Assembly: GCF_046119375.1 (NCBI RefSeq)
Contig: NW_027362764.1
Location: forward strand, 810,216,001 to 810,280,000
Length of the DNA stretch: 64,000 nt
DNA from: Phyllobates terribilis
Taxonomy: Eukaryota
Direction: 5' to 3'
Every line of letters starts with the position of its first letter. Within the stretch, counting starts at the first letter, position 1. The notes beneath the pieces were generated by a model. The model did not search any database, was not told where the DNA came from, and worked only from the letters and a program-made list of their open reading frames with translations. This document shows, piece by piece, positions 19,059 to 47,849 of the stretch. The translations under genes and the position numbers were made by a program.

Positions 19059-19879
19059 GGAACTGTGCGAGACTCCACCATTACATGTCAGCAAAAAAAC
19101 ACCAGTGTAAAGCGATTCACTGGAGGTGAGGCGCCATTGCCAGCAGAACCAGTACCAGCACCACCAACAGCAGAACCGGCACCACCAGCAGGAACTGTGA
19201 GACTCGATTACAGGTAAGAAAAAACAATTGTATAGATCACACTAAGGGTGAGGCTACATTGCCAGCACCAGAGTCAGCACCAACAGCAGAACCAGTAACA
19301 GCAGAACCAGTACTACAAAAATAGAAATACCCACAATGCTGTCTGTTGTCTTACGCGTCTCACAATGCAGGACGCGCTGAAGCCAAGTCAGGATTTCTCT
19401 TCAATACGAAAATTAGCAACGATTTCCGGTCACCAACACTCTAACCCCCCCTCCGGTGTCAGCCCATACCCACCTCCCCCTCCGGTCTCTGCCCTTCCCC
19501 CTTCCGGTCTCCGCCCTTACCTCACTTCCTCCTCTCGTCTCCGCCCTTACCTCACTTCTCCCTCCGGTCTCCGCCCTTACACCCCCTTCCCCCTCCGGTC
19601 TCCACCCTTAAGAGGGAGGTCTCTGTCCTTACACGCCCCCCTCCGGTATCTGCCTTTACCCCCCTCTGATCATTATGGCTCTGGTCTGGACTCAGCAGGG
19701 GGAGAAAACATCAGAAAAGTCCCTGCAGCGCCCCCTGTGTAGTGTACGGAGCATTAGAGGGTTCGAACATTTTCTTATATTGTTGGCTGCTCCGATCAGT
19801 GGATTCCGGTCTTTTTTCGTCGCTCACAACTGACGAGCTCTTGCTTTACGTATCGCTTCGCTCCGGTTTCGGGTCGCTC

Positions 19880-22800: not shown

Positions 22801-25150
22801 TCGGGTCCGGCTTCGTTCCTCGGTGTCGGTCCCTTCGGTCCGGCTTCGTTCCTCGGTGTCGGTCCCTCCGGTCCGGCTTCGTTCCTCAGTGTCGGTCCCT
22901 CCGGTCCGGCTTCGTTCCTCGGCGTCGGTCCCTCGGGTCCGGCTTCGTTCCTCGGCGTCGGTCCCTCGGGTCCGGCTTCGTTCCTCGGCGTCCGTTCCTC
23001 CGGTCCGGCTTCGTTTCTCGGTGTCGGTCCCTCCGGTCCGGCTTCGTTCCTCAGTGTCGGTCCCTCCGGTCCAGCTTCGTTCCTCGGCGTCGGTCCCTCG
23101 GGTCCGGCTTCGTTCCTCGGTGTCGGTCCCTTCGGTCCGGCTTCGTTCCTCGGTGTCGGTCCCTCCGGTCCGGCTTCGTTCCGCGGTGTCGGTCCCTTCG
23201 GTCCGGCTTCGTTCCTCGGTGTCGGTCCCTCCGGTCCGGCTTCGTTCCTCGGCGTCGGTCCCTCGGGTCCGGCTTCGTTCCTCGGCGTCCGTTCCTCCGG
23301 TCCGGCTTCGTTTCTCGGTGTCGGTCCCTCTGGTCCGGCTTCGTTCCTCAGTGTCGGTCCCTCCGGTCCGGCTTCGTTCCTCGGCGTCGGTCCCTCGGGT
23401 CCGGCTTCGTTCCTCGGTGTCGGTCCCTTCGGTCCGGCTTCGTTCCTCGGTGTCGGTCCCTCCGGTCCGGCTTCGTTCCGCGGTGTCGGTCCCTTCGGTC
23501 CGGCTTCGTTCCTCGGCGTCCGTTCCTCCGGTCCGGCTTCGTTTCTCGGTGTCGGTCCCTCCGGTCCGGCTTCGTAACGCGGTGTCGGTCCCTTCGGTCC
23601 GGCTTCGTCCCTCGGTGTCGGTCCCTCCGCTCCGGCTTCCTTCCTCGGCGTCGGTCCCTCCGCTCCGGCTTCCTTCCTCGGCGTCGGTCCCTCCGCTCCG
23701 ACTTCCTTCCTCGGCGTCGGTCCCTCCGCTCCGGCTTCGTTCCTCGGCATCGGTCACTCGGGTCCGGCTTCGTTCCTCGGCGTCGGTCCCGGCTTCGTTC
23801 CCCGGCGTCGGTCCCTCGGGTCCGGCTTCGTTCCTCGGCGTCGGTCCCTCGGGTCCGGCTTCGTTCCTCGGCGTCGGTCCCTCGGGTCCGGCTTCGTTCC
23901 TCGGCGTCGGTCCCTCGGGTCCGGCTTCGTTCCTCGGCGTCGGACCCTCGGGTCCGGCTTCGTTCCTCGGCGTCGGTCCCTCGGGTCCGGCTTCGTTCCT
24001 CGGCGTCGGTCCCTCAGGTCCGGCTTCGTTCCTCGGCGTCGGTCCCGGCTTCGTTCCTCGGCGTCGGTTCCTCGGGTCCGGCTTCGTTCCTCGGCGTCGG
24101 TCCCTCGGGTCAGGCTTCGTTCCTCGGCGTCGGTCCCGGCTTCGTTCCTCGGCGTCGGTCCCTCGGGTCCGGCTTCGTTCCTCGGTGTCGGTCCCTCGGG
24201 TCCGGCTTCGTTCCTCGGCATCGGTCCCTCGGGTCCGGCTTCCTTCCTCGGCGTCGGACCCTCATGTCCGGCTTCCTTCCTCGGCGTCGGTCCGGCTTCG
24301 GTCCCTCGGGTCCGGCTTCGTTCCTCGGGTCCGCCTTCGTTCCTCGGCGTCGGACCCTCGGGTCCGGCTTCGTTCCTCGGCGTCGGTCCCTCGGGTCCGG
24401 CTTCGTTCCTCGGCGTCGGTCCCTCGGGTCCGGCTTCGTTCCTCGGCGTCGGTCCCTCGGGTCCGGCTTCGTTCCTCGGTGTCGGTCCCTTCGGTCCGGC
24501 TTCGTTCCTCGGTGTCGGTCCCTCCGGTCCGGCTTCGTTCCGCGGTGTCGGTCCCTTCGGTCCGGCTTCGTTCCTCGGTGTCGGTCCCTCCGGTCCGGCT
24601 TCGTTCCTCAGTGTCGGTCCCTCCGGTCCGGCTTCGTTCCTCGGCGTCGGTCCCTCGGGTCCGGCTTCGTTCCTCGGTGTCGGTCCCTTCGGTCCGGCTT
24701 CGTTCCTCGGTGTCGGTCCCTCCGGTCCGGCTTCGTCCCGCGGTGTCGGTCCCTTCGGTCCGGCTTCGTTCCTCGGTGTCGGTCCCTCCGGTCCGGCTTC
24801 GTTCCTCAGTGTCGGTCCCTCCGGTCCGGCTTCATTCCTCGGCGTCGGTCCCTCGGGTCCGGCTTCGTTCCTCGGCGTCGGTCCCTCGGGTCCGGCTTCG
24901 TTCCTCGGTGTCGGTCCCTTCGGTCCGGCTTCGTTCCTCGGTGTCGGTCCCTCCGGTCCGGCTTCGTTCCGCGGTGTCGGTCCCTCCGGTCCGGCTTCGT
25001 TCCGCGGTGTCGGTCCCTCCGGTCCGGCTTCGTTCCTCGGCGTCCGTTCCTCCGGTCCGGCTTCGTTTCTCGGTGTCGGTCCCTCCGGTCCGGCTTCGTA
25101 ACGCGGTGTCGGTCCCTTCGGTCCGGCTTCGTTCCTCGGTGTCGGTCGCT
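19880..25150. repeat. 33-bp CpG-rich, A-poor minisatellite array immediately upstream of CFAP20
   Basis: Unit GGTCCGGCTTCGTTCCTCGGCGTCGGTCCCTCG; 11-aa periodicity in ORFs; a 319-bp direct duplication at the start (ORF starts 20067 and 20386 are identical and offset by 319). Confidence 0.97.
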
Positions 25151-25339
25151 CTGCAGACACTAGCACTGCGGGCTCAGTAATGACCGGCCACTCTTGCTCC
25201 TTCTTTTCCGTCCTCCGCCTCCTCAAGCTCAGGAGCTGCCAGCAACAAACATGGCGGCCGTTCACATTCTTGGCCCCGCCTTTTCCGGTCAGCTGACTCA
25301 GGCGGGTCTCCAAGAGACGGAACTGTGTACTAATAAACA

Positions 25340-25477: not shown

Positions 25478-25561
25478 ATGTTCAAGAACACCTTCCAGTC
25501 CGGCTTCCTGTCCATCCTGTACAGCATCGGCAGCAAGCCCCTGCAGATCTGGGACAAGAAG
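25478..25561 (+). CDS. CFAP20: CFAP20 (BUG22/GTL3/C16orf80) coding exon 1, 84 nt
   Basis: Encodes [28 protein letters not shown], the recognised CFAP20 N-terminus; context GCACCATG; donor AAG|GTGAGC at 25562. Confidence 0.97.
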
Positions 25562-25586
25562 GTGAGCCTGCGCCCCCTGGTGACAG

Positions 25587-27584
25587 GAGAGTCCGGTGCG
25601 TTCCCCCCCCAGAGAGTCCGGTGCGTTCCCCCCTCCAGAGAGTCCGGCGCGTGCTCTCCCCCCCCTCCAGAGAGTCCGGCGCGTGCTCTCCCCCCCTCCA
25701 GAGAGTCCGGCGCGTGCTCTCCCCCCCTCCAGAGAGTCCGGCGCGTGCCCTCCCCCCCCTCCAGAGAGTCCGGCGCCTGCTCTCCCCCCCCCCCCCTCCA
25801 GAGAGTCCGGCGCGTGCTCTCCCCCCCTCCAGAGAGTCCGGCGCGTGCTCTCCCCCCCTCCAGAGAGTCCGGCGCGTGCTCTCCCCCCCTCCAGAGAGTC
25901 TGGCGCGTGCTCTTCCCCCCCCCCTCCAGAGAGTCTGGCGCGTGCTCTCCCCCCCCCCCCTCCAGAGAGTCCGGCGCGTGCTCTCCCCCCCTCCAGAGAG
26001 TCCGGCGCGTGCTCTCCCCCCCTCCAGAGAGTCCGGCGCGTGCTCTCCCCCCCTCCAGAGAGTCCGGCGCGTGCTCTCCCCCCCTCCAGAGAGTCCGGCG
26101 CGTGCTCTCCCCCCCTCCAGAGAGTCCGGCGCGTGCTCTCCCCCCCTCCAGAGAGTCCGGCGCGTGCTCTCCCCCCTCCAGAGAGTCCGGCGCGTGCTCT
26201 CCCCCCCTCCAGAGAGTCCGGCGCGTGCTCTCCCCCCCTCCAGAGAGTCCGGCGCGTGCTCTCCCCCCCTCCAGAGAGTCCGGCGCGTGCTCTCCCCCCC
26301 TCCAGAGAGTCCGGCGCGTGCTCTCCCCCCCTCCAGAGAGTCCGGCGCGTGCTCTCCCCCCCTCCAGAGAGTCCGGCGCGTGCTCTCCCCCCCTCCAGAG
26401 AGTCCAGCGCGTGCTCTCCCCCCTCCAGAGAGTCCGGCGCGTGCTCTCCCCCCCTCCAGAGAGTCCGGCGCGTGCTCTCCCCCCCTCCAGAGAGTCCGGC
26501 GCGTGCTCTCCCCCCCTCCAGAGAGTCCGGCGCGTGCTCTCCCCCCCTCCAGAGAGTCCGGCGCGTGCTCTCCCCCCCTCCAGAGAGTCCGGCGCGTGCT
26601 CCCCCCCCTCCAGAGAGTCTGGCGCGTGCTCTCCTCCCCCCCCCTCCAGAGAGTCTGGCGCGTGCTCTCCCCCCCCCCCCTCCAGAGAGTCTGGCGCGTG
26701 CTCTCCCCCCCTCCAGAGAGTCTGGCGCGTGCTCTCCCCCCCTCCAGAGAGTCCGGCGCGTGCTCTCCCCCCTCCAGAGAGTCCGGCGCGTGCTCTCCCC
26801 CCCTCCAGAGAGTCCGGCGCGTGCTCTCCCCCCTCCAGAGAGTCCGGCGCGTGCTCTCCCCCCCTCCAGAGAGTCCGGCGCGTGCTCCCCCCCCTCCAGA
26901 GAGTCTGGCGCGTGCTCTCCTCCCCCCCCCTCCAGAGAGTCTGGCGCGTGCTCTCCCCCCCCCCCCTCCAGAGAGTCTGGCGCGTGCTCTCCCCCCTCCA
27001 GAGAGTCTGGCGCGTGCTCTCCCCCCCTCCAGAGAGTCTGGCGCGTGCTCTCCTCCCCCCCCCCTCCAGAGAGTCTGGCGCGTGCTCTCCCCCCCCCCCT
27101 CCAGAGAGTCTGGCGCGTGCTCTCCCCCCCTCCAGAGAGTCCGGCGCGTGCTCTCCCCTCCTCCAGAGAGTCCGGCGCGTGCTCTCCCCTCCTCCAGAGA
27201 GTCCGGCGCGTGCTCTCCCCCCCTCCAGAGAGTCCGGCGCGTGCTCTCCCCCCCTCCAGAGAGTCCGGCGCGTGCTCTCCCCCCTCCAGAGAGTCCGGCG
27301 CGTGCTCTCCCCCCCTCCAGAGAGTCCGGCGCGTGCTCTCCCCCCCTCCAGAGAGTCCGGCGCGTGCTCTCCCCCCCTCCAGAGAGTCCGGCGCGTGCTC
27401 TACCCCCCCCCCCCCTCCAGAGAGTCCGGCGCGTGCTCTACCCCCCCCCCCCTCCAGAGAGTCCGGCGCGTGCTCTACCCCCCCCCCCTCCAGAGAGTCC
27501 GGCGCGTGCTCTACCCCCCCCCCCCCCCCTCCAGAGATTCCGGCGCGTGCTCCCCCCCCCCCCTCCAGAGAGTCCGGCGCGTGC
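25587..27584. repeat. CFAP20 intron 1 array A, about 31-bp unit with a variable poly-C run
   Basis: Unit CCAGAGAGTCCGGCGCGTGCTCTCCCCCCCT. Confidence 0.96.
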
Positions 27585-28565
27585 TAATGACTCTATATAA
27601 TAGATCCCTCTGTGTGTAATGACTATAGAATAGATCCCTCTGTGTGTAATGACTCTATAGAATAGATCCCTCTGTGTGTAATGACTATAGAATAGATCCC
27701 TCTGTGTGTAATGACTATAGAATAGATCCCTCTGCGTGTAATGACTCTATATAATAGACCCCTCTGCGTGTAATGACTCTATATAATAGACCGCTCTGCG
27801 TGTAATGACTCTATATAATAGATCCCACTGCGCGTAATGACTCTATAGAATAGATCGCTCTGCGCGTAATGACTCTATAGAATAGAACGCTCTGCGCGTA
27901 ATGACTCTATAGAATAGATCGCTCTGCGCGTAATGACTCTATAGAATAGATCGCTCTGCGCGTAATGACTCTATAGAATAGATCGCTCTGCGCGTAATGA
28001 CTCTATAGAATAGATCCCTCTGTGCGTAATGACTCTATAGAATAGATCCCTCTGCGCGTAATGACTCTATAGAATAGATCCCTCTGCGCGTAATGACTCT
28101 ATAGAATAGATCCCTCTGCGCGTAATGACTCTATAGAATAGATCCCTCTGCGCGTAATGACTCTATAGAATAGATCCCTCTGCGCGTAATGACTCTATAG
28201 AATAGATCCCTCTGCGCGTAATGACTCTATAGAATAGATCCCTCTGCGCGTAATGACTCTATAGAATAGATCCCTCTGCGCGTAATGACTATAGAATAGA
28301 TCCCTCTGCGCGTAATGACTATAGAATAGATCCCTCTGCGCGTAATGACTCTATAGAATAGATCCCTCTGCGCGTAATGACTCTATAGAATAGATCCCTC
28401 TGCGCGTAATGACTATAGAATAGATCCCTCTGCGCGGAATGGCTCTATAGAATAGATCCCTCTGCGTGGAATGGCTCTATAGAATAGATCCCTCTGCGTG
28501 GAATGGCTCTATAGAATAGATCCCTCTGCGTGGAATGGCTCTATAGAATAGATCCCTCTGCGTGG
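27585..28565. repeat. CFAP20 intron 1 array B, 32-bp unit (30-bp variant)
   Basis: Unit TAATGACTCTATAGAATAGATCCCTCTGCGCG. Confidence 0.96.
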
Positions 28566-31500
28566 AATGATGTATATAACCCCTATAGACGTGCAGTGTG
28601 GTCTCCACCGTGTAATGATGTATATGACCCCTATAGACGTGCAGTGTGGTCTCCCCCGTGTAATGATGTATATGACCCCTATAGATGTGCAGTGTGGCCT
28701 CCCCCGTGTAACGGTGTATATAACCCCTATAGACGTGCAGTGTGGTCTCCCTCTTGTAACGATGTATATGACCCCCTATAGATGTGCAGTGTGGTCTCCT
28801 CCCGTGTAATGATGTATATGACCCCTATAGATGTGCAGTGTGGTCCCCCCGTGTAATGATGTATATGACCCCTATAGATGTGCAGTGTGGTCTCCCCCGT
28901 GTAATGATGTATATGACCCCTATAGATGTACAGTGTGGTCTCCACCGCGTAATGATGTATATGACCCCTATAGATGTACAGTGTGGTCTCCCCCGCGTAA
29001 TGATGTATATGACCCCTATAGATGTGCAGTGTGGTCTCCCCCGTGTAATGATGTATATGACCCCTATAGATGTGCAGTGTGGTCTCCCCCTTGTAATGAT
29101 GTATATGACCCCTATAGATGTGGTCTCCCCCTTGTAATGATGTATATGACCCCTATAGATGTGCAGTGTGGCCTCCCCCTTCTAATGATGTATATGACCC
29201 CTATAGATGTGCAGTGTGGTCTCCCCCTTGTAATGATGTATATGACCCCTATAGATGTGCAGTGTGGTCTCCCCCTTGTAATGATGTATATGACCCCTAT
29301 AGATGTGCAGTGTGGTCTCCCCCTTGTAATGATGTATATGACCCCTGTAGATGTGCAGTGTGGTCTCCCCCGTGTAATGATGTGTATGACCCCTGTAGAT
29401 GTGCAGTGTGGTCTCCCCGTGTAATGATGTATATGACCCCTATAGATGTGCAGTGAGGTCTCCCCCGCGTAATGATGTATCTGACCCCTATAGATGTGCA
29501 GTGTGGTCTCCCCCGTGTAATGATGTATATGACCCCTATAGATGTGCAGTGAGGTCTCCCCCGCGTAATGATGTATCTGACCCCTATAGATGTGCAGTGA
29601 GGTCTCCCCCGCGTAATGATGTATCTGACCCCTATAGATGTGCAGTGAGGTCTCCCCCGCGTAATGATGTATATGACCCCTATAGATGTGCAGTGTGGTC
29701 TCCCCGTGTAATGATGTATATGACCCCTATAGATGTACAGTGTGGTCTCCCCGTGTAATGATGTATATGACCCCTATAGATGTGCAGTGTGGTCTCCCCC
29801 GCGTAATGATGTATATGACCCCTATAGATGTGCAGTGAGGTCTACCCCGTGTAATGATGTATATGACCCCTATAGATGTGCAGTGTGGTCTCCCCCGTGT
29901 AATGATGTATATGACCCCTATAGATGTGCAGTGTGCTCTCCTCCCATGTAATGATGTATATGACCCCTATAGATGTGCAGTGTGGTCTCCCCCGTGTAAT
30001 GATGTATATGACCCCTATAGATGTGCAGTGTGGCCTCCCCCGTGTAATGATGTATATGACCCCTATAGATGTGCAGTGTGGTCTCCCCCGTGTAATGATG
30101 TATATGACCCCTATAGATGTACAGTGTGGTCCCCCCCGTGTAATGATGTATATGACCCCTATAGATGTACAGTGTGGTCCCCCCCGTGTAATGATGTATA
30201 TGACTCCTATAGATGTGCAGTGTGGTCTCCCCCGCGTAATGATGTATATGACTCCTATAGATGTGCAGTGTGGTCTCCCCCGCGTAATGATGTATATGAC
30301 TCCTATAGATGTGCAGTGTGGTCCCCCCCGCGTAATGATGTATATGACTCCTATAGATGTGCAGTGTGGTCCCCCCCGCGTAATGATGTATATGACTCCT
30401 ATAGATGTGCAGTGTGGTCTCCCCCGCGTAATGATGTATATGACTCCTATAGATGTGCAGTGTGGTCTCCCCGCGTAATGATGTATATGACCCCTATAGA
30501 TGTGCAGTGTGGTCTCCCCCGCGTAATGATGTATATGACCCCTATGGATGTGCAGTGTAGTCTCCCCCGCGTAATGATGTATATGACCCCTATAGATGTT
30601 CAATGTGGTCTCCCCGTTTAATGATGTATATGACCCCTATAGATGTACAGTGTGGTCTCCCCGTGTAATGATGTATATGACCCCTATAGATGTGCAGTGT
30701 GGTCTCCCCCGCGTAATGATGTATATGACCCCTATAGATGTGCAGTGAGGTCTACCCCGTGTAATGATGTATATGACCCCTATAGATGTGCAGTGTGGTC
30801 TCCCCCGTGTAATGATGTATATGACCCCTATAGATGTGCAGTGTGCTCTCCTCCCGTGTAATGATGTATATGACCCCTATAGATGTGCAGTGTGGTCTCC
30901 CCCGTGTAATGATGTATATGACCCCTATAGATGTGCAGTGTGGCCTCCCCCGTGTAATGATGTATATGACCCCTATAGATGTGCAGTGTGGCCTCCCCCT
31001 TGTTATGATGTATATGACCCCTATAGATGTGCAGTGTGGTCTCCCCCGTGTAATGATGTATATGACCCCTATAGATGTGCAGTGTGGTCTCCCCCGTGTA
31101 ATGATGTATATGACCCCTATAGATGTGCAGTGAGGTCTCCCCCGTGTAATGATGTATATGACCCCTATAGATGTGCAGTGAGGTCTCCCCCACCTAATGA
31201 TGTATATGACCCCTATAGATGTGCAGTGTGCTCTCCTCCCGTGTAATGATGTATATGACCCCTATAGATGTGCAGTGAGGTCTCCCCCACCTAATGATGT
31301 ATATGACCCCTATAGATGTGCAGTGCGGTCTCCCCCTTGTAATGATGTATATGACCCCTATAGATGTATATGACCCCTATAGATGTGCGGTGAGGTCTCC
31401 CCCGCGTAATGATGTATATGACCCCTATAGATGTGCGGTGTGGTCTCCCCCGCGTAATGATGTATATGACCCCTATAGATGTGCGGTGTGGTCTCCCCCG

Positions 31501-33586
31501 CGTAATGATGTATATGACCCCTATAGATGTGCGGTGTGGTCTCCCCCGCGTAATGATGTATATGACCCCTATAGATGTGCGGTGTGGTCTCCCCCGCGTA
31601 ATGATGTATATGACCCCTATAGATGTGCGGTGTGGTCTCCCCCGCGTAACGATGTATATGACCCCTATAGATGTGCGGTGTGGTCTCCCCCGTGTAACGA
31701 TGTATATGACCCCTATAGATGTGCGGTGTGGTCTCCCCCGTGTAACGATGTATATGACCCCTATAGATGTACGGTGTGGTCCCCCCCGTGTAATGATGTA
31801 TATGACCCCTATAGATGTGCAGTGTGGTCTCCCCGTGTAATGATGTATATGACCCCTATAGATGTAGTGTGGTCCCCCCCGTGTAATGATGTATATGACC
31901 CCTATAGATGTGCAGTGTGGTCTCCCCCGTGTAATGATGTATATGACCCCTATAGATGTACAGTGTGGTCCCCCCCGTGTAATGATGTATATGACCCCTA
32001 TAGATGTACAGTGTGGTCCCCCCCGTGTAATGATGTATATGACCCCTATAGATGTACAGTGTGGTCCCCCCCGTGTAATGATGTATATGACTCCTATAGA
32101 TGTGCAGTGTGGTCTCCCCCGCGTAATGATGTATATGACTCCTATAGATGTGCAGTGTGGTCTCCCCCGCGTAATGATGTATATGACCCCTATAGATGTA
32201 CAGTGTGGTCCCCCCCGTGTAATGATGTATATGACCCCTATAGATGTACAGTGTGGTCTCCCCCGTGTAATGATGTATATGACTCCTATAGATGTGCAGT
32301 GTGGTCTCCCCCGCGTAATGATGTATATGACTCCTATAGATGTGCAGTGTGGTCTCCCCCGTGTAATGATGTATATGACTCCTATAGATGTGCAGTGTGG
32401 TCTCCCCCGCGTAATGATGTATATGACTCCTATAGATGTGCAGTGTGGTCTCCCCCGCGTAATGATGTATATGACTCCTATAGATGTGCAGTGTGGTCTC
32501 CCCCGCGTAATGATGTATATGACTCCTATAGATGTGCAGTGTGGTCTCCCCCGCGTAATGATGTATATGACCCCTATGGATGTGCAGTGTGGTCTCCCCC
32601 GCGTAATGATGTATATGACCCCTATGGATGTGCAATGTGGTCTCCCCGTTTAATGATGTATATGACCCCTATAGATGTGCAGTGTGGTCTCCCCCGTGTA
32701 ATGATATATATGACCCCTATAGATGTGCAGTGTGGTCTCCCCCGTGTAATGATGTATATGACCCCTATAGATGTGCAGTGTGGTCTCCCCCGTGTAATGA
32801 TGTATATGACCCCTATAGATGTGCAGTGTGGTCTCCCCCGTGTAATGATGTATATGACCCCTATGGATGTGCAGTGTGGTCTCCCCCGTGTAATGATGTA
32901 TATGACCCCTATGGATGTGCAGTGTGGTCTCCCCCGTGTAATGATGTATATGACCCCTATAGATGTGCAGTGTGGTCTCCCCGTTTAATGATGTATATGA
33001 CCCCTATAGATGTGCAGTGTGGTCTCCCCCGTGTAATGATGTATATGACCCCTATAGATGTGCAGTGTGGTCTCCCCCGTGTAATGATGTATATGACCCC
33101 TATAGATGTGCAGTGTGGTCTCCCCCGTGTAATGATGTATATGACCCCTATAGATGTGCAGTGTGGTCTCCCCCGTGTAATGATGTATATGACCCCTATG
33201 GATGTGCAGTGTGGTCTCCCCCGTGTAATGATGTATATGACCCCTATAGATGTGCAGTGTGGTCTCCCCGTTTAATGATGTATATGACCCCTATAGATGT
33301 GCAGTGTGGTCTCCCCCGTGTAATGATGTATATGACCCCTATAGATGTGCAGTGTGGTCTCCCCCGTGTAATGATGTATATGACCCCTATAGATGTGCAG
33401 TGTGGTCTCCCCCGTGTAATGATGTATATGACCCCTATAGATGTGCAGTGTGGTCTCCCCCGTGTAATGATGTATATGACCCCTATAGATGTACAGTGTG
33501 GTCCCCCCCGTGTAATGATGTATATGACCCCTATAGATGTACAGTGTGGTCCCCCCCGTGTAATGATGTATATGACCCCTATAGAT
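28566..33586. repeat. CFAP20 intron 1 array C, 48-bp unit (47-bp variant)
   Basis: Unit TAATGATGTATATGACCCCTATAGATGTGCAGTGTGGTCTCCCCCGTG; 16-aa periodicity in ORFs. Confidence 0.97.
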
Positions 33587-33674
33587 ACGCCGGCATTGCC
33601 TAGTGTCCTTTGTAGTCTTTGAGCAGAGGGTGTGTCCATGTAAGACCCTCCCCCTGACTCCGCCTCTTCTGTAG

Positions 33675-33754
33675 GTGCGGAACGGTCACATCAAGAGGAT
33701 AACGGACAACGACATCCAGTCTCTGGTGCTGGAGGTGGAGGGAACCAACGTCAG
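33675..33754 (+). CDS. CFAP20: CFAP20 exon 2, 80 nt
   Basis: ctgtag|GTG CGG AAC; encodes VRNGHIKRITDNDIQSLVLEVEGTNV(S); donor AG|GTGAGT. Confidence 0.96.
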
Positions 33755-34039: not shown

Positions 34040-34151
34040 CACCACATACATAACGTGCCCGGCAGACCCCAAGAAAACCCTGGGCATCAAGCTGCCCTTC
34101 CTGGTCATGATCATCAAGAACCTCAAGAAATATTTCACCTTTGAAGTGCAG
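34040..34151 (+). CDS. CFAP20: CFAP20 exon 3, 112 nt
   Basis: ttttttag|C ACC ACA; encodes [37 protein letters not shown]; donor CAG|GTGAGC. Confidence 0.97.
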
Positions 34152-34283: not shown

Positions 34284-34472
34284 GTGCTGGATGATAAGAA
34301 CGTGCGGCGGAGGTTTCGTGCTAGTAACTACCAGAGCACCACGCGGGTGAAGCCGTTCATCTGCACCATGCCCATGAGACTAGACGACGGCTGGAACCAG
34401 ATTCAGTTTAACCTCTCAGACTTCACCCGCAGGGCGTACGGCACAAATTATATCGAGACCCTCAGAGTACAG
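34284..34472 (+). CDS. CFAP20: CFAP20 exon 4, 189 nt
   Basis: atgcag|GTG CTG GAT; encodes [63 protein letters not shown]; donor CAG|GTTCGA. Confidence 0.97.
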
Positions 34473-34592: not shown

Positions 34593-34703
34593 ATTCATGC
34601 AAACTGCAGAATTCGACGAGTTTATTTCTCAGATCGTCTGTATTCTGAAGATGAACTGCCTGCAGAGTTCAAGCTGTACCTACCCGTACAGAACAAGGCG
34701 AAA
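34593..34703 (+). CDS. CFAP20: CFAP20 exon 5, 111 nt
   Basis: gttttag|ATT CAT GCA; encodes [37 protein letters not shown]; donor AAA|GTAAGT. Confidence 0.97.
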
Positions 34704-34861
34704 GTAAGTGCACCCAGACTCGTATTTCTGCCCCTCTCTCACCCATCCGGCCTCTTCCTTGCAGCCACTCTCCCGCGTGCCTGGCCCTGCCCTCCTCCCC
34801 AGCCTTGCTTTCCCCACCCCAATCCCTCATTTGCACCGATCGTCCTTCTCTGGTCTTGCAG

Positions 34862-34867
34862 CAGTGA
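34862..34867 (+). CDS. CFAP20: CFAP20 terminal exon coding part (CAG TGA, Gln-stop), nearest copy; 19 further equivalent copies lie downstream, the last at 37037-37042
   Basis: ccttctctggtcttgcag|CAGTGA gives the expected ...NKAKQ* end and a 582-nt CDS (193 aa). Which copy is used cannot be determined from DNA. Confidence 0.65.
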
Positions 34868-34878
34868 TTGGTGCCGGC

Positions 34879-35169
34879 TAGTGTTGAGCGAGTATGTTCT
34901 ATTAACCCTTTCGGAGAGTATGCTCGGGCCGAGCTCTGACTACTTACAGCTGCTCGGTGATATGGTTGAATCACTCCCGTGTGCATGATTTGCAACTGTT
35001 TGACAGCTTTATTACATGTGAAGAATGTCTATTTCTTACACATTCCTCACATGTAATAAAGCTGTCAGACAGTTGCAAATCATGCACACGGGAGCGATTT
35101 AACCTTATCAGCGAGCAGCTGTAAATACTCGGAACTCAGCCCGAGACAGAACATACTCACTCAACACTA
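34879..35169. mobile_element. Non-autonomous hAT-type MITE, 291 bp, near-palindromic, with an 8-bp target-site duplication
   Basis: Termini TAGTGTTGAGCGAGTATGTTCT ... AGAACATACTCACTCAACACTA (21/22 inverted match); long inner inverted repeat; flanked by GTGCCGGC at 34871-34878 and 35170-35177. An 8-bp TSD with TAG/CAG termini is characteristic of hAT elements. Confidence 0.85.
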
Positions 35170-35177
35170 GTGCCGGC

Positions 35178-37060
35178 TCTTCCCCCGCAGGCCCCTCCGC
35201 CCCAGCCTTGCTTTCCCCACTCCTCACTCCCCTCCTTTGCCCTGATCGTCCTTCTCGTAGCAGTGATTGGCGCCGGCTCTTCCTCCGCCCCAGCCTTGCT
35301 TTCCCCACCCCTCACTCCCCTCCTTTGCCCTGATCGTCCTCTTGCCTTGCAGCAGAGATTGGCGCCGTCTCTTCCTCCGCAGGCCCCTCCGCCTTGCTTT
35401 CCCCACCCCTCACTCCCCTCCTTTGCACTGATCTTCCTTCTCTTGTCTTGCAGCAGTGATTGGCGCTGGCTCTTCCATGGCGGGGCCCCTCCGCCTTGCT
35501 TTCCCCACCCCTCACTCCCCTCCTTTGCACTGATCTTCCTTCTCGTGTTGCAGCAGTGATTGGCGCTTGCTTTCCCCACCCCTCACTCCCCTCCTTTGCA
35601 CTGATCTTCCTTCTCTTGTGTTGCAGCAGTGATTGGCGCTGGCTCTTCCTCCGCATGCCCCTCTGCCTTGCTTTCCCCACCCCTCACTCCCCTCCTTTGC
35701 ACTGATCTTCCTTCTCTTGTCTTGCAGCAGTGATTGGCGCTGGCTCTTCCTCCGCGGGGCCCCTCCGCCTTGCTTTCCCCACCCCTCACTCCCCTCCTTT
35801 GCACTGATCTTCCTTCTCTTGTCTTGCAGCAGTGATTGGCGCTGGCTCTTCCTCCGCGGGGCCCCTCCGCCTTGCTTTCCCCACCCCTCACTCCCCTCCT
35901 TTGCACTGATCTTCCTTCTCTTGTGTTGCAGCAGTGATTGGCGCTGGCTCTTCCTCCGCAGGCCCCTCCGCCTTGCTTTCCCCACCCCTCACTCCCCTCC
36001 TTTGCACTGATCTTCCTTCTCTTGTCTTGCAGCAGTGATTGGCGCTGGCTCTTCCTCCGCCTTGCTTTCCCCACCCCTCACTCCCCTCCTTTGCACTGAT
36101 TTTCCTTCTCTTGTGTTGCAGCAGTGATTGGCGCTGGCTCTTCCTCCGCATGCCCCTCTGCCTTGCTTTCCCCACCCCTCACTCCCCTCCTTTGCACTGA
36201 TCTTCCTTCTCTTGTCTTGCAGCAGTGATTGGCGCTGGCTCTTCCTCCGCGGGGCCCCTCCGCCTTGCTTTCCCCACCCCTCACTCCCCTCCTTTGCACT
36301 GATCTTCCTTCTCTTGTCTTGCAGCAGTGATTGGCGCTGGCTCTTCCTCCGCCTTGCTTTCCCCACCCCTCACTCCCCTCCTTTGCACTGATCTTCCTTC
36401 TCTTGTCTTGCAGCAGTGATTGGCGCCGGCTCTTCCTCCGCCTTGCTTTCCCCACCCCTCACTCCCCTCCTTTGCACTGATCTTCCTTCTCTTGTCTTGC
36501 AGCAGTGATTGGCGCCGGCTCTTCCTCCGCCTTGCTTTTCCCACCCCTCACTCCCCTCCTTTGCACTGATCTTCCTTCTCTTGTCTTGCAGCAGTGATTG
36601 GCGCTGGCTCTTCCTCCGCCTTGCTTTCCCCACCCCTCACTCCCCTCCTTTGCACTGATCTTCCTTCTCTTGTCTTGCAGCAGTGATTGGCGCCGGCTCT
36701 TCCTCCGCCTTGCTTTCCCCACCCCTCACTCCCCTCCTTTGCACTGATCTTCCTTCTCTTGTCTTGCAGCAGTGATTGGCGCCGGCTCTTCCTCCGCCTT
36801 GCTTTTCCCACCCCTCACTCCCCTCCTTTGCACTGATCTTCCTTCTCTTGTCTTGCAGCAGTGATTGGCGCTGGCTCTTCCTCCGCCTTGCTTTCCCCAC
36901 CCCTCACTCCCCTCCTTTGCACTGATCTTCCTTCTCTTGTCTTGCAGCAGTGATTGGCGCCGGCTCTTCCTCCGCCTTGCTTTCCCCACCCCTCACTCCC
37001 CTCCTTTGCACTGATCTTCCTTCTCTTGTCTTGCAGCAGTGATTGGCACCGGCTCTTCTT
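35178..37060 (+). repeat. About 89-102-bp tandem array (20 copies) built from the CFAP20 intron 5 3' end and terminal exon start
   Basis: Unit GCCTTGCTTTCCCCACCCCTCACTCCCCTCCTTTGCACTGATCTTCCTTCTCTTGTCTTGCAGCAGTGATTGGCGCTGGCTCTTCCTCC aligns to 34800-34878. Confidence 0.95.
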
Positions 37061-37166
37061 CTCCCAGGATTTAGTGTTTTCTACGTTGAGCAGTTCCCAC
37101 TTTTCATCGACTTCTAAATTATGAAACGTTTTGGGCTGAGAGACTCAGAATCGCAGATGTTTTTGT

Positions 37167-37172
37167 AATAAA
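37167..37172 (+). terminator. Candidate CFAP20 polyadenylation signal AATAAA
   Basis: First AATAAA after the repeat array, followed by T/GT-rich sequence. Confidence 0.55.
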
Positions 37173-37420
37173 TTTGATCTTGCCGCTTCATGTGTCTCGT
37201 TCTCACGTGGGAGGGAAGGGTCGCCCTGTGCTGTGCAGAGAGGGTCACACTTCCACGACGATTCGAGTCTAGCAGTGAATGCTGGGATATGTGCTGGCTC
37301 ATTGGGACCCCCGTACACCCATTTCCCCAGTCTCTGCAGCCAAACAGCAGAGTTCACAATAATCACTCCTGTGCGGAGGTCTCTGAGGACGGACCACCTC
37401 CGTTTGGTGTAGATCAGGAG

Positions 37421-38577: not shown

Positions 38578-41500
38578 CAGCACCCAGACACCACCGACCA
38601 GGCCATCAGACACGGCCCAGCACCCAGACACCACCGACCAGGCCATCAGACGCGGCCCAGCACCCAGACACCACCGACCAGGCCATCAGACGCGGCCCAG
38701 CACCCAGACACCACCGACCAGGCCATCAGACGCGGCCCAGCACCCAGACACCACCGACCAGGCCATCAGACGCGGCCCAGCACCCAGACACCACCGACCA
38801 GGCCATCAGACGCGGCCCAGCACCCAGACACCACCGACCAGGCCATCAGACGCGGCCCAGCACCCAGACACCACCGACCAGGCCATCAGACGCGGCCCAG
38901 CACCCAGACACCACCGACCAGGCCATCAGACGCGGCCCAGCACCCAGACACCACCGACCAGGCCATCAGACGCGGCCCAGCACCCAGACACCACCGACCA
39001 GGCCATCAGACGCGGCCCAGCACCCAGACACCACCGACCAGGCCATCAGACGCGGCCCAGCACCCAGACACCACCGACCAGGCCATCAGACGCGGCCCAG
39101 CACCCAGACACCACCGACCAGGCCATCAGACGCGGCCCAGCACCCAGACACCACCGACCAGGCCATCAGACGCGGCCCAGCACCCAGACACCACCGACCA
39201 GGCCATCAGACACTGCCCAGCACCCAGACACCACCCATCAGGCCATCAGACACTGCCCAGCACCCAGACACCACCCATCAGACACTGCCCAGCACCCAGA
39301 CACCACCGACCAGGCCATCAGACACTACCGACCAGGCCATCAGACACTGCCCAGCACCCAGACACCACCGACCAGGCCAACAGACACTGCCCAGCACCCA
39401 GACACCACCGACCAGGCCATCAGACACTGCCCAGCACCCAGACACCACCGGCCAGGCCATCAGACACTGCCCAGCACCCAGACACCACCCATGAGACACT
39501 GCCCAGCACCCAGACACCACCCATGAGACACTGCCCAGCACCCAGACACCACCCATCAGACACTGCCCAGCACCCAGACACCACCCATCAGACACTGCCC
39601 AGCACCCAGACACCACCCATCAGACACTGCCCAGCACCCAGACACTGCCCAGCACCCAGACACTGCCCAGCACCCAGACACTGCCCAGCACCCAGACACC
39701 ACCCATCAGACACCACCGACCAGGCCAACAGACACCGCCCAGCACCCAGACACCACCGACCAGGCCATCAGGCACCGCCCAGCACCCAGACACCACCGAC
39801 CAGGCCATCAGGCACCGCCCAGCACCCAGACACCACCGACCAGGCCATCAGACGCGGCCCAGCACCCAGACACCACCGACCAGGCCATCAGACGCGGCCC
39901 AGCACCCAGACACCACCGACCAGGCCATCAGACACCACCGACCAGGCCATCAGACACCGCCGACCAGGCCAACAGACACCGCCCATCAGACACTGCCCAG
40001 CACCCAGACACCGCCGACCAGGCCAACAGACACTGCCCAGCACCCAGACACCGCCCATCAGACACTGCCCAGCACCCAGACACCGCCCATCAGACACTGC
40101 CCAGCACCCAGACACCGCCCATCAGACACTGCCCAGCACCCAGACACCACCCATCAGACACTGCCCAGCACCCAGACACCACCCATCAGACACTGCCCAG
40201 CACCCAGACACCACCCATCAGACACTGCCCAGCACCCAGACACCACCCATCAGACACTGCCCAGCACCCAGACACCACCCATCAGACACCACCGACCAGG
40301 CCAACAGACACCGCCCAGCACCCAGACACCACCGACCAGGCCAACAGACACCGCCCAGCACCCAGACACCACCGACCAGGCCAACAGACACCGCCCAGCA
40401 CCCAGACACCACCGACCAGGCCATCAGACACCGCCCAGCACCCAGACACCACCGACCAGGCCATCAGACGCGGCCCAGCACCCAGACACCACGGACCAGG
40501 CCATCAGACGCGGCCCAGCACCCAGACACCACCGACCAGGCCATCAGACGCGGCCCAGCACCCAGACACCACGGACCAGGCCATCAGACGCGGCCCAGCA
40601 CCCAGACACCACGGACCAGGCCATCAGACGCGGCCCAGCACCCAGACACCACCGACCAGGCCATCAGACGCGGCCCAGCACCCAGACACCACCGACCAGG
40701 CCATCAGACGCGGCCCAGCACCCAGACACCACCGACCAGGCCATCAGACGCGGCCCAGCACCCAGACACCACCGACCAGGCCATCAGACGCGGCCCAGCA
40801 CCCAGACACCACCGACCAGGCCATCAGACGCGGCCCAGCACCCAGACACCACCGACCAGGCCATCAGACGCGGCCCAGCACCCAGACACCACCGACCAGG
40901 CCATCAGACGCGGCCCAGCACCCAGACACCACCGACCAGGCCATCAGACGCGGCCCAGCACCCAGACACCACCGACCAGGCCATCAGACGCGGCCCAGCA
41001 CCCAGACACCACCGACCAGGCCATCAGACGCGGCCCAGCACCCAGACACCACCGACCAGGCCATCAGACGCGGCCCAGCACCCAGACACCACCGACCAGG
41101 CCATCAGACGCGGCCCAGCACCCAGACACCACCGACCAGGCCATCAGACGCGGCCCAGCACCCAGACACCACCGACCAGGCCATCAGACGCGGCCCAGCA
41201 CCCAGACACCACCGACCAGGCCATCAGACGCGGCCCAGCACCCAGACACCACCCATCAGACACTGCCCAACACCCAGACACCACCGACCAGGCCAACAGA
41301 CACTGCCCAGCACCCAGACACCACCCATCAGACAATGCCCAGCACCCAGACACCACCCATCAGACACTGCCCAGCACCCAGACACCACCGGCCAGGCCAA
41401 CAGACACTGCTCAGCACCCAGACACCACCGACCAGGCCATCAGACACTGCCCAGCACCCAGACACTGCCCAGCACCCAGACACTGCCCAGCACCCAGACA

Positions 41501-44500
41501 CTGCCCAGCACCCAGACACCACCCATCAGACACCACCGACCAGGCCAACAGACACCGCCCAGCACCCAGACACCACCGACCAGGCCATCAGGCACCGCCC
41601 AGCACCCAGACACCACCGACCAGGCCATCAGGCACCGCCCAGCACCCAGACACCACCGACCAGGCCAACAGACACTGCCCAGCACCCAGACACCACCCAT
41701 CAGACAATGCCCAGCACCCAGACACCACCGGCCAGGCCAACAGACACTGCTCAGCACCCAGACACCACCGACCAGGCCATCAGACACTGCCCAGCACCCA
41801 GACACCACCCATCAGACACTGCCTAGCACCCAGACACCACCGACCAGGCCAACAGACACCGCCCATCAGACACTGCCCAGCACCCAGACACCACCCATCA
41901 GACACTGCCCAGCACCCAGACACCACCCATCAGACACTGCCCAGCACCCAGACACCACCCATCAGACACTGCCCAGCACCCAGACACCACCCATCAGACA
42001 CCACCGACCAGGCCATCAGACGCGGCCCAGCACCCAGACACCACCGACCAGGCCATCAGACGCGGCCCAGCACCCAGACACCACCGACCAGGCCATCAGA
42101 CGCGGCCCAGCACCCAGACACCACCGACCAGGCCATCAGACGCGGCCCAGCACCCAGACACCACCGACCAGGCCATCAGACGCGGCCCAGCACCCAGACA
42201 CCACCGACCAGGCCATCAGACGCGGCCCAGCACCCAGACACCACCCATCAGACAATGCCCAGCACCCAGACACCACCCATCAGACACTGCCCAGCACCCA
42301 GACACCACCGGCCAGGCCAACAGACACTGCTCAGCACCCAGACACCACCGACCAGGCCATCAGACACTGCCCAGCACCCAGACACCACCCATCAGACACT
42401 GCCTAGCACCCAGACACCACCGACCAGGCCAACAGACACCGCCCATCAGACACTGCCCAGCACCCAGACACCACCCATCAGACACTGCCCAGCACCCAGA
42501 CACCACCCATCAGACACTGCCCAGCACCCAGACACCACCCATCAGACACTGCCCAGCACCCAGACACCACCCATCAGACACTGCCCAGCACCCAGACACC
42601 ACCCATCAGACACTGCCCAGCACCCAGACACCACCCATCAGACACTGCCCAGCACCCAGACACCGCCCATCAGACACTGCCCAGCACCGACACCGCCCAT
42701 CAGACACTGCCCAGCACCCAGACACCGCCCATCAGACACTGCCCAGCACCCAGACACCACCCATCAGACACTGCCCAGCACCCAGACACCACCCATCAGA
42801 CACCACCGACCAGGCCAACAGACACCGCCCAGCACCCAGACACCACCGACCAGGCCATCAGACGCGGCCCAGCACCCAGACACCACCGACCAGGCCATCA
42901 GACGCGGCCCAGCACCCAGACACCACCGACCAGGCCATCAGACGCGGCCCAGCACCCAGACACCACCGACCAGGCCATCAGACGCGGCCCAGCACACAGA
43001 CACCACCGACCAGGCCATCAGACGCGGCCCAGCACACAGACACCACCGACCAGGCCATCAGACGCGGCCCAGCACCCAGACACCACCGACCAGGCCATCA
43101 GACGCGGCCCAGCACCCAGACACCACCGACCAGGCCATCAGACGCGGCCCAGCACCCAGACACCACCGACCAGGCCATCAGACGCGGCCCAGCACCCAGA
43201 CACCACCGACCAGGCCATCAGACGCGGCCCAGCACCCAGACACCACCGACCAGGCCATCAGACGCGGCCCCGCACCCAGACACCACCGACCAGGCCATCA
43301 GACGTGGCCCAGCACCCAGACACCACCCATCAGACACTGCCCAGCACCCAGACACCACCGACCAGGCCAACAGACACTGCCCAGCACCCAGACACCACCC
43401 ATCAGACAATGCCCAGCACCCAGACACCACCGACCAGGCCAACAGACACTGCCCAGCACCCAGACACCACCCATCAGACAATGCCCAGCACCCAGACACC
43501 ACCGACCAGGCCAACAGACACTGCCCAGCACCCAGACACCACCCATCAGACAATGCCCAGCACCCAGACACCACCCATCAGACACTGCCCAGCACCCAGA
43601 CACCACCGGCCAGGCCAACAGACACTGCTCAGCACCCAGACACCACCGACCAGGCCATCAGACACTGCCCAGCACCCAGACACCACCCATCAGACACTGC
43701 CTAGCACCCAGACACCACCGACCAGGCCAACAGACACCGCCCATCAGACACTGCCCAGCACCCAGACACCACCCATCAGACACTGCCCAGCACCCAGACA
43801 CCACCCATCAGACACTGCCCAGCACCCAGACACCACCCATCAGACACTGCCCAGCACCCAGACACCACCCATCAGACACCACCGACCAGGCCAACAGACA
43901 CCGCCTAGCACCCAGACACCACCGACCAGGCCAACAGACACCGCCCAGCACCCAGACACCACCGACCAGGCCATCAGGCACCGCCCAGCACCCAGACACC
44001 ACCGACCAGGCCATCAGGCACCGCCCAGCACCCAGACACCACCGACCAGGCCATCAGACACCGCCCAGCACCAAGACACCACCGACCAGGCCATCAGACA
44101 CTGCCCAGCACCCAGACACCACCGACCAGGCCATCAGACACGGCCCAGCACCAAGGCACCACCGACCAGGCCATCAGACACTGCCCAGCACCCAGACACC
44201 ACCCATCAGACACTGCCCAGCACCCAGACACCACCGACCAGGCCATCAGGCACCGCCCAGCACCCAGACACCACCGACCAGGCCATCAGACACCGCCCAG
44301 CACCCAGACACCACCGACCAGGCCATCAGACACTGCCCAGCACCCAGACCAGGCCATCAGATACTGCCCAGCACCCAGACACCACCCATCAGACACTGCC
44401 CAGCACCCAGACACCACCGACCAGGCCATCAGACACTGCCCAGCACCAAGACACCACCGACCAGGCCATCAGACACTGCCCAGCACCAAGACACCACCGA

Positions 44501-47500
44501 CCAGGCCATCAGACACTGCCCAGCACCCAGACACCACCGACCAGGCCATCAGACACTGCCCAGCACCCAGACACCACCGACCAGGCCATCAGACACGACC
44601 CAGCACCAAGACACCACCGACCAGGCCAACAGACACTGCCCAGCACCCAGACACCACCCATCAGACACTGCCCAGCACCCAGACACCACCCATCAGACAC
44701 TGCCCAGCACCCAGACACCACCCATCAGACACTGCCCAGCACCCAGACACCACCCATCAGACACTGCCCAGCACCCAGACACCACCCATCAGACACCACC
44801 GACCAGGCCAACAGACACCGCCTAGCACCCAGACACCACCGACCAGGCCAACAGACACCGCCCAGCACCCAGACACCACCGACCAGGCCATCAGGCACCG
44901 CCCAGCACCCACACACCACCGACCAGGCCATCAGGCACCGCCCAGCACCCAGACACCACCGACCAGGCCATCAGACACTGCCCAGCACCCAGACACCACC
45001 GACCAGGCCATCAGACACGGCCCAGCACCAAGGCACCACCGACCAGGCCATCAGACACTGCCCAGCACCCAGACACCACCCATCAGACACTGCCCAGCAC
45101 CCAGACACCACCGACCAGGCCATCAGGCACCGCCCAGCACCCAGACACCACCGACCAGGCCATCAGACACCGCCCAGCACCCAGACACCACCGACCAGGC
45201 CATCAGACACTGCCCAGCACCCAGACCAGGCCATCAGATACTGCCCAGCACCCAGACACCACCCATCAGACACTGCCCAGCACCCAGACACCACCGACCA
45301 GGCCATCAGACACTGCCCAGCACCAAGACACCACCGACCAGGCCATCAGACACTGCCCAGCACCAAGACACCACCGACCAGGCCATCAGACACTGCCCAG
45401 CACCCAGACACCACCGACCAGGCCATCAGACACGGCCCAGCACCAAGACACCACCGACCAGGCCAACAGACACTGCCCAGCACCCAGACACCACCCATCA
45501 GACACTGCCCAGCACCCAGACACCACCAACTAGGCCAACAGACACTGCCCAGCACCCAGACACCACCGACCAGGCCATCAGACACTGCCCAGCACCCAGA
45601 CACCACCGACCAGGCCATCAGACACTGCTCAGCACCCAGACACCACCGACCAGGCCATCAGACACTGCTCAGCACCCAGACACCACCCATCACCCAGACA
45701 CCACCGACCAGGCCATCAGACACTGCCCAGCACCCAGACACCACCGACCAGGCCATCAGACACTGCCCAGCACCCAGACACCACCGACCAGGCCATCAGA
45801 CACTGCCCAGCACCCAGACACCACAGACCAGGCCATCAGACACTGCCCAGCACCCAGACACCACCGACCAGGCCATCAGACACTGCCCAGCACCCAGACA
45901 CCACCGACCAGGCCATCAGACACTGCCCAGCACCCAGACACCACCGACCAGGCCATCAGACACTGCCCAGCACCCAGACACCACCGACCAGGCCATCAGA
46001 CACTGCCCAGCACCCAGACACCACCCATCAGACACTGCCCAGCACCCAGACACCACCCATCAGACACTGCCCAGCACCCAGACACCACCGACCAGGCCAA
46101 CAGACACTGCCCAGCACCAAGACACCACCGACCAGGCCATCAGACACTGCCCAGCACCAAGACACCACCCATCAGACACTGCCTAGCACCCAGACACCAC
46201 CGACCAGGCCAACAGACACCGCCCATCAGACACTGCCCAGCACCCAGCACCCAGACACCACCCATCAGACACTGCCCAGCACCCAGACACCACCCATCAG
46301 ACACTGCCCAGCACCCAGACACCACCCATCAGACACTGCCCAGCACCCAGACACCACCCATCAGACACTGCCCAGCACCCAGACACCACCCATCAGACAC
46401 CACCGACCAGGCCAACAGACACCGCCCAGCACCCAGACACCACCGACCAGGCCAACAGACACCGCCCAGCACCCAGACACCACCGACCAGGCCATCAGGC
46501 ACCGCCCAGCACCCAGACACCACCGACCAGGCCATCAGGCACCGCCCAGCACCCAGACACCACCGACCAGGCCATCCGGCACCGCCCAGCACCCAGACAC
46601 CACCGACCAGGCCATCCGGCACCGCCCAGCACCCAGACACCACCGACCAGGCCATCAGACACCGCCCAGCACCCAGACACCACCGACCAGGCCATCAGAC
46701 ACTGCCCAGCACCCAGATCAGGCCATCAGATACTGCCCAGCACCCAGACACCACCCATCAGACACTGCCCAGCACCCAGACACCACCGACCAGGCCATCA
46801 GACACTGCCCAGCACCAAGACACCACCGACCAGGCCATCAGACACTGCCCAGCACCCAGACACCACCGACCAGGCCATCAGACACGGCCCAGCACCAAGA
46901 CACCACCGACCAGGCCAACAGACACTGCCCAGCACCCAGACACCACCCATCAGACACTGCCCAGCACCCAGACACCACCGACCAGGCCATCAGACACCGC
47001 CCAGCACCCAGACACCACCGACCAGGCCATCAGACACTGCCCAGCACCCAGACCAGGCCATCAGATACTGCCCAGCACCCAGACACCACCCATCAGACAC
47101 TGCCCAGCACCCAGACACCACCGACCAGGCCATCAGACACTGCCCAGCACCAAGACACCACCGACCAGGCCATCAGACACTGCCCAGCACCCAGACACCA
47201 CCGACCAGGCCATCAGACACGGCCCAGCACCAAGACACCACCGACCAGGCCAACAGACACTGCCCAGCACCCAGACACCACCCATCAGACACTGCCCAGC
47301 ACCCAGACACCACCGACTAGGCCAACAGACACTGCCCAGCACCCAGACACCACCGACCAGGCCATCAGACACTGCCCAGCACCCAGACACCACAGACCAG
47401 GCCATCAGACACTGCCCAGCACCCAGACACCACCGACCAGGCCATCAGACACTGCCCAGCACCCAGACACCACCGACCAGGCCATCAGACACTGCCCAGC

Positions 47501-47640
47501 ACCCAGACACCACCGACCAGGCCATCAGACACTGCCCAGCACCCAGACACCACCCAGCACCCAGACACCACCCATCAGACACTGCCCAGCACCCAGACCC
47601 CACCCATCAGACACTGCCCAGCACCCAGACACCACCAATC
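38578..47640. repeat. DGAT1 intron 15 modular minisatellite, about 9 kb, mixing 40-bp and 32-bp units
   Basis: Units CCAGCACCCAGACACCACCGACCAGGCCATCAGACGCGGC (40) and CCCAGCACCCAGACACCACCCATCAGACACTG (32), plus shorter deletion variants. Confidence 0.97.
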
Positions 47641-47849
47641 AGGCTACCAGTCAGAGCTCAGACACCTCATATCAGGCCAGCACCTGATACCAAAAGTTTG
47701 TCTTCCACTCAGACCCCACCTGGCCACCACCCTGCACCCAGACACTACCTGGCCGGCCACCATCTTGCGCCAAAACTTTATCATCACCACATACACAGGT
47801 GGGCTTGGACAGCGACCGGCCTTTGCATTGGATCATAATATGTTCTAAC

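Follow-up and report, generated by a model that had tools for sequence, protein, structure and literature searches.

The boundary between the last intron and the terminal exon of CFAP20 in Phyllobates terribilis is occupied by a tandem array of 21 units, each derived from the intron-5/exon-6 junction of this gene. The array was found in a stretch of 64,000 nucleotides (NCBI RefSeq assembly GCF_046119375.1, contig NW_027362764.1, positions 810,216,001 to 810,280,000 of the forward strand), which is called the window here and to which all frog positions refer. In 20 of the 21 units the acceptor is directly followed by CAG TGA, the glutamine codon and the stop codon with which CFAP20 ends. It is likely that the array is a locally born and still-expanding minisatellite of the variable number tandem repeat (VNTR) type lying over this junction, which is tolerated by the gene and not purpose-built.

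The whole window was searched on both strands for a cassette of 30 nt and AG, followed across the splice boundary by CAG[A/T]GATTGG. The search returned 21 sites, all on the plus strand, with exon starts at 34862, 35261, 35353, 35454, 35554, 35627, 35728, 35830, 35932, 36033 and 36122 (copies 1-11) and at 36223, 36325, 36414, 36503, 36592, 36681, 36770, 36859, 36948 and 37037 (copies 12-21). No further cassette was detected outside the array on either strand, and an array of 21 cassettes is far beyond chance. These are exactly the positions at which the original prediction had placed 21 acceptor-plus-stop cassettes. CAG TGA is kept in all of them except copy 3 (35353-35358, plus strand), in which the stop is lost to CAG AGA. 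The frame of copy 3 stays open for 68 codons, so that the read-through predicted for it holds, and splicing to it would append 67 residues after Gln. Because Gln-stop lies inside the unit, the other 20 acceptors would yield the same protein of 193 residues, as had been claimed. Copy 1, the donor-proximal Gln-stop cassette (34862-34867, plus strand), has the acceptor TCTTGCAG directly before CAGTGA, with CTCAT (at -33) and CCGAT as candidate branch motifs. Copy 2 (35261-35266, plus strand) has a degraded acceptor, ctcgTAG/CAGTGA (the slash marks the splice boundary), from which TTGCAG has been lost. The last copy runs into unique 3' untranslated region (3'UTR) and is the probable ancestral terminal exon (37037-37195, 3' end approximate, plus strand), with AATAAA at 37167-37172 and a GT-rich downstream element. 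A metagenome scan with a 20-nt cassette gave only 13 single matches of 21-37 nt, all of them due to chance.

Tandem Repeats Finder (TRF), the pattern search and the alignment of units together place the array at 34795-37062 on the plus strand, with approximate edges. The TRF call itself covers 35205-37058 (period 89, 19.9 copies, score 1503), with 98% matches in the 3' part at 36257-37058. The units, phased on the exon starts of the cassettes, contain about 65 nt of the intron-5 tail (CTCAC, CTGAT with its A at -23, and the tract TCTTCCTTCTCTTGTCTTGCAG) and about 25 nt of exon 6 (CAGTGATTGGCGCYGGCTCTTCC). The repeated unit is the acceptor-plus-stop segment, as originally proposed. The proposal that the terminal exon had been amplified is right as regards the tandem array, but it was only the junction that was copied and not the whole exon. 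Unit 1 (after removal of an insert described below) and units 3, 4, 6-9, 11 and 12 are 100-102 bp long; unit 2 has 92 bp, unit 5 has 73 bp, and unit 10 and units 13-20 have 89 bp. The 5' flank (34795-34861, row u00 of the alignment) is unique intron tail that is 83% identical to the unit consensus, and the 3' flank (row u21) begins as a unit and continues as unique 3'UTR. Each flank thus carries on half a unit as unique sequence, which is the mark of an array duplicated in place from the junction. Similar CT-rich motifs are present at the unit edges, CCTCCTCCCCAGCC (about position 34790) and CTTCTTCTCCCAGG (about position 37056).

The array also carries a record of its growth. Identity to the consensus climbs from the 5' edge, from 83% over 89%, 91% and 97% to 98-100%. 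Units 5-7 recur as units 10-12 at 99.6% identity, which is a segmental duplicate. The youngest block, at 36325-37036 on the plus strand (712 bp), is built of a 267-bp (3 x 89) higher-order repeat, of which there are 2.67 copies with 100% identity. Copies 1, 2, 3, 5 and 21 have downstream flanks of their own, and the other copies form distinguishable subfamilies (CGCTGG or CGCCGG; tails of 89 or 101 nt). Head-to-tail units, many copies, high similarity, length classes and higher-order repeats are all found here, as in minisatellites and VNTRs in general, whose units measure about 10-100 bp. Thus the array follows ordinary minisatellite dynamics: its youngest growth lies beside the true terminal exon, and its 5' units are the oldest and are decaying.

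That the gene carrying the array is CFAP20, as the original prediction had it, is clear from its coding sequence. The coding exons were placed by short CFAP20 motifs, and their canonical splice sites were then checked. On the plus strand, exon 1 (25478-25561, from ATG to KK) matches residues 1-28 of Oncorhynchus CFAP20 isoform X1 (P0101) without a mismatch and is followed by the donor GTGAGC at 25562. Exon 2 (33675-33754) has the acceptor ctgtag/GTGCGG and the donor AG/GTGAGT, and exons 3 (34040-34151) and 4 (34284-34472) have canonical splice sites. Exon 5 (34593-34703) ends in NKAK and is followed by the donor AAA/GTAAGT from 34704. Residues 1-192 of P0101 are identical to the translations of frog exons 1-5, in order and contiguously, an identity that was established exon by exon and not on a joined frog protein model. 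In a protein word search with the open frame spanning exon 3, intron 3 and exon 4, all matches belonged to PF05018 (CFA20_dom). Three such searches, with this frame, with the frame of exon 5 and intron 5, and with residues 1-192 of P0101, returned proteins of other species only and gave no match to residues encoded by the frog introns; with residues 1-192 of P0101, too, every match carried PF05018. The residues of exons 2 and 4 are compatible with non-amniote vertebrates. Database CFAP20 proteins that are correctly spliced end in KAKQ, in agreement with the claim that only Gln-stop follows exon 5, and predictions that retain the intron continue with V (GT...) after KAK, from fish to mammals. 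On this evidence the terminal micro-coding exon, Gln-stop, is ancestral to CFAP20.

Splice signals were scored with approximate position weight matrices (PWM), and the scores serve for relative comparison only. On this scale the value is 5.7 for copy 1, 3.2 for copy 2, 4.9 for copy 3 and 7.4-9.2 for copies 4-21, and the four constitutive acceptors of CFAP20 range from 4.7 to 8.6. In copies 4-21 the branch motif is CTGAT (A at -23), pyrimidines make up 82-88%, and AG is absent from the 50 nt upstream; the pyrimidine tract of copy 1 is weaker than theirs. As judged from their sequence, copies 4-21 are competent 3' splice sites, and copy 1 is a competent acceptor too, though weaker than the later copies. 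The better branch motif and purer tract that had been noted downstream are found in copies 4-21. The earlier account of copy 1 was only partly right: CCGAT is present and the scoring of each copy does rank copies 4-21 above it, but its description as a poor acceptor was overstated, since its score falls within the constitutive range and it has in addition the yUnAy match CTCAT with the A at -33. The boundary reads CAGCAG in 20 cassettes and TAGCAG in copy 2, so that the NAGNAG motif ascribed to these acceptors is real. It is inherent to a first codon CAG, because the salmon acceptor also reads TAGCAG.

The region has only one strong donor, AAA/GTAAGT at 34703/34704, with 5.6 bits in the approximate donor matrix, and by the same matrix the array contains no donor-like site above about 0.4 bits. 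With no usable donor, the array cannot create introns in the 3'UTR. Poly(A) signals were scanned in 34700-37400 for 13 variants (AATAAA and 12 other common ones), and only two were found, AATAAA at 35055 and AATAAA at 37167. The latter lies 130 nt past the last copy and is followed by the GT-rich element. None of the 13 variants occurs within the array units, and this sets the array apart from tandem alternative polyadenylation. The range of 3'UTR lengths given earlier, 0.15-2.3 kb, is arithmetically correct if the signal at 37167 is used. Among RNA pairings able to steer acceptor choice, including those of the start of the intron with the array, none was found except between the arms of the insert in unit 1, and no Rfam family was found anywhere in the window.

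This insert is a hAT-like miniature inverted-repeat transposable element (MITE) of 291 bp in the exon part of unit 1 (34879-35169, no strand assigned). It has terminal inverted repeats (TIRs) beginning TAGTGTTGAG and a target-site duplication (TSD) of 8 bp, GTGCCGGC, at 34871-34878 and 35170-35177. The TIRs are 23 nt long and 96% complementary, and they start with TAGTG (YARNG). The element is palindromic, contains no open reading frame (ORF) and is the only insert of its kind in the array. With it the first unit measures 399 bp, and 100 bp once it is taken out. Its RNA forms an almost perfect hairpin of about 140 bp (-199 kcal/mol, z -27). It therefore has the features of a hAT-type MITE, namely TIRs, an 8-bp TSD, small size and the absence of coding sequence. 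It resembles such elements in its YARNG-type TIRs, its TSD, its lack of an ORF and its hairpin fold, and differs from them in being a single copy here, as no second copy occurs within the window. hAT elements are abundant in the published draft genome of P. terribilis (PMC12208295). The AATAAA at 35055 is located within the stem of the hairpin and for this reason is probably poorly accessible. Splicing at the first acceptor would put the double-stranded RNA (dsRNA) of about 140 bp, together with the buried AATAAA, into the CFAP20 mRNA.

The CFAP20 locus was compared in salmon and Arapaima. In salmon (Oncorhynchus, L014) there is one acceptor, ttatag/CAGTAG, 917 nt past exon 5, and AATAAA follows about 115 nt further. 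In Arapaima (L015, L016) the one plausible acceptor lies about 140 nt upstream of its AATAAA. Each of these fish has a single acceptor, and it is the last frog copy, at 37037 with AATAAA after 130 nt, that matches their layout. Because the acceptor-to-AATAAA layout is the same, the ancestral terminal exon is most likely the stretch from 37037 to about 37195. The 2,175 bp that separate 34862 from 37037, made up of 20 repeat periods, the MITE and one copy of the TSD, are most likely lineage-specific additions. A 'CFAP20-like' protein of Pelodytes (P0289) was considered as a frog orthologue and set aside, as it is a diverged, paralogue-like sequence. It was also observed that the annotated Oncorhynchus isoform X1 proteins P0101, P0102 and P0107 are read-through products of intron 5 with the tail VSTNN... 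(L014, 7543-8600).

The array lies in a window that is rich in tandem repeats. Tandem arrays make up about 45.4 kb of the 64 kb (71%). About 98% of intron 1 of CFAP20 (25562-33674, 8.1 kb) consists of three abutting minisatellites with 31-, 32- and 48-bp units (25603-33586), which begin about 40 nt past the exon-1 donor, and the frame of exon 1 remains open for 713 codons into them. Upstream of the gene there are arrays of 75-bp units (1-14935), 30-bp units (15451-19059) and 33-bp units (19864-25151), the last of which ends about 330 bp before the CFAP20 ATG. Downstream there is an array of 40-bp units (38578-47644), followed by several arrays of 20-42-bp units at 49.3-54.7 kb. The arrays of the window show extreme GC and AT skews, and the long ORFs in them are repeat artefacts. 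Fragments of reverse transcriptase (RVT_1) were observed at 57419-58024 on the plus strand and at 60391-60846 on the minus strand, together with a weak match to a tyrosine recombinase (Phage_integrase) at 59861-60256 on the plus strand. The retroelement remnants of 57419-60846 are possibly DIRS-like.

Our data suggest the following course of events. The array would have started with a tandem duplication of a segment of about 95 bp spanning the intron-5/exon-6 boundary of CFAP20, and the CT-rich motifs at its edges could have mediated the first slippage or unequal exchange. Later growth would have proceeded by single-unit, segmental (units 5-7 and 10-12) and three-unit higher-order duplications, mainly on the 3' side. 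Meanwhile the 5' units would have aged, and one of them would have received the hAT-type MITE. Several features could explain why such growth was tolerated. Gln-stop, which is all that the terminal exon codes for, lies inside the unit; the array, having no usable donor, cannot produce 3'UTR introns that would expose the mRNA to nonsense-mediated decay; and the probable ancestral short terminal exon with its poly(A) site is still intact past the last copy. The array is thus best understood as a by-product of repeat-prone DNA rather than a device, because 71% of the window is minisatellite, the repeat dynamics are ordinary, copies 2 and 3 are decaying and a MITE sits in unit 1.

At the RNA level the donor at 34704 would select among competing acceptors and give a passive mix of 3'UTR lengths with an unchanged protein. 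That several acceptors are used as such a real, passive mixture is conceivable from their sequence, although we would put it at somewhat short of an even chance. Among equal 3' splice sites the donor-proximal one is usually preferred, and co-transcriptional splicing works on a 'first come, first served' basis. On the other hand, terminal-exon definition reportedly ties recognition of the 3' splice site to that of the poly(A) site (Niwa and Berget; Vagner et al. 2000). As these two influences pull in opposite ways, acceptor choice would be expected to favour both ends of the array: near the donor, copy 1 and the first copies of full strength (from 35454 on), and at the far end the poly(A)-coupled last copy.

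The array could instead be a passive repeat, read in one of two ways, neither of which we consider likely. Only the last acceptor, at 37037, might be used, leaving the MITE and the other copies as silent decoys within an intron 5 of 2.3 kb. The fish-like layout of this copy, with its acceptor, about 130 nt and AATAAA, would fit this, as would the tie of the 3' splice site to the poly(A) site in terminal-exon definition and the removal of the 140-bp dsRNA hairpin from the mRNA. It is opposed by the usual preference for the donor-proximal among equal sites, by copy 1, which is transcribed first and scores like the other acceptors of the gene, and by the 20 cassettes lying upstream, including the strong copies 4-20. 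No more probable is the almost exclusive use of 34862, which would place the MITE and 20 cassettes in a 3'UTR of 2.3 kb or let the transcript end at the AATAAA at 35055. This choice would leave the shortest intron, of 158 nt and similar to introns 2-4 of CFAP20. The acceptor is the first to be transcribed, scores an adequate 5.7, has CTCAT at -33 as a branch motif and is followed by AATAAA 193 nt downstream. Yet its pyrimidine tract is weaker than those of copies 4-21, the AATAAA at 35055 lies hidden within the stem of the hairpin, and it may be a disadvantage for every mRNA to carry a long perfect hairpin. A part of the copy number may also be an artefact of assembly, through an over-expanded or mis-resolved repeat. 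The last 712 bp, with their perfectly identical 267-bp blocks, are what such an error might leave behind; but the window is without N, units 1-12 vary in length and by point changes whose nested pattern can be interpreted, and a MITE is found in unit 1, so that an artefact is very unlikely.

The array could also be a selected multi-acceptor device, in which many acceptors would join the 34703 donor and provide up to about 20 3'UTR lengths and a redundant stop for regulation or robustness. Copies 4-21 have a canonical branch motif, a tract of up to 88% pyrimidines and approximate PWM scores of up to 9.2, which is above the other acceptors of the gene; CAG TGA is kept in 20 of 21 copies, and a single donor faces no competing donors. 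However, recent amplification, as seen in the 100%-identical higher-order copies, explains the identity of the copies without selection. The older copies decay, in the acceptor of copy 2 and in the stop of copy 3, the units have no poly(A) signal, the window is saturated with comparable arrays, and the other vertebrates compared manage the two-codon exon with a single acceptor. We regard such a device as improbable. It is equally hard to believe that the array acts as an 'acceptor landing pad', where many acceptors are used, each 3'UTR receives 0-20 pyrimidine/C-rich units with or without the 140-bp hairpin, and a copy-number-variable length tunes the mRNA. If this were true, the length of the array would tune the stability, localisation or translation of the mRNA of a core ciliary protein while the protein stays unchanged.

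The explanation of a tolerated, still-expanding minisatellite has its own weak points. Copies 4-21 are stronger than copy 1 as acceptors, and CAG TGA is preserved in every one of them. Such intact strong copies fit very recent amplification, and they are also expected from selection for usable acceptors. That the last 2.67 higher-order copies are perfectly identical could be due in part to the assembly. Which acceptors and which 3' end are used is inferred from the sequence, and the age and lineage restriction of the array were judged from fish loci in place of an orthologous frog locus. All these points weigh against the explanation that we favour.

It is useful to set the array beside known systems. 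It resembles minisatellites and VNTRs that arise from exon-intron junctions, as in both a junction segment is copied head to tail in repeat-prone DNA and a splice signal is multiplied, the extra sites being thought to be mostly tolerated. Here, in contrast, the copied segment holds the 3' splice site of the last intron and all the remaining coding sequence, Gln-stop, and each copy is a complete alternative that is protein-neutral save for copy 3. NAGNAG tandem alternative acceptors, reportedly described by Hiller et al. (2004), likewise have several acceptors competing for one donor, and each CAGCAG cassette of the array could drop the terminal Gln. In NAGNAG pairs the acceptors are 3 nt apart and have a common branch point and tract, whereas here complete 3' splice sites occur every 73-102 nt over 2.2 kb. 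With tandem 3'UTR alternative polyadenylation and alternative last exons the array has in common that one protein could be made with several 3'UTR lengths; the difference is that length here would depend on which acceptor is chosen ahead of a single poly(A) site, and not on several poly(A) sites. The tandem-duplication model of intron gain, with the potato RdRp case (PMC4974935) as an example, describes a comparable situation: a tandem duplication that contains a splice site can be spliced out or passed over, so that the coding sequence stays as it was and the gene tolerates the duplication. In that model one duplication gives a new intron, whereas the frog array stands for about 20 rounds at a terminal junction that was already there, without need of a new intron. 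A published description of an acceptor-plus-stop array was not found in the literature searched, which is weak evidence of absence.

The array has a practical side for annotation, as gene predictors may settle on any one of the 21 equivalent terminal exons. Provided that the acceptors are used, the locus would be a natural 21-way competition assay, in which one donor is offered 18 strong, nearly identical sites spaced 73-102 nt apart and, at the 5' edge, three older degraded copies, all with one poly(A) site. Such an assay would weigh donor proximity, transcription order and poly(A)-coupled terminal-exon definition against one another in vivo. If the acceptors are unused, the array would be one more repeat-prone gene boundary of a very large frog genome. 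It appears that runaway repeat growth can be tolerated at junctions whose entire downstream coding content fits inside the repeat unit.

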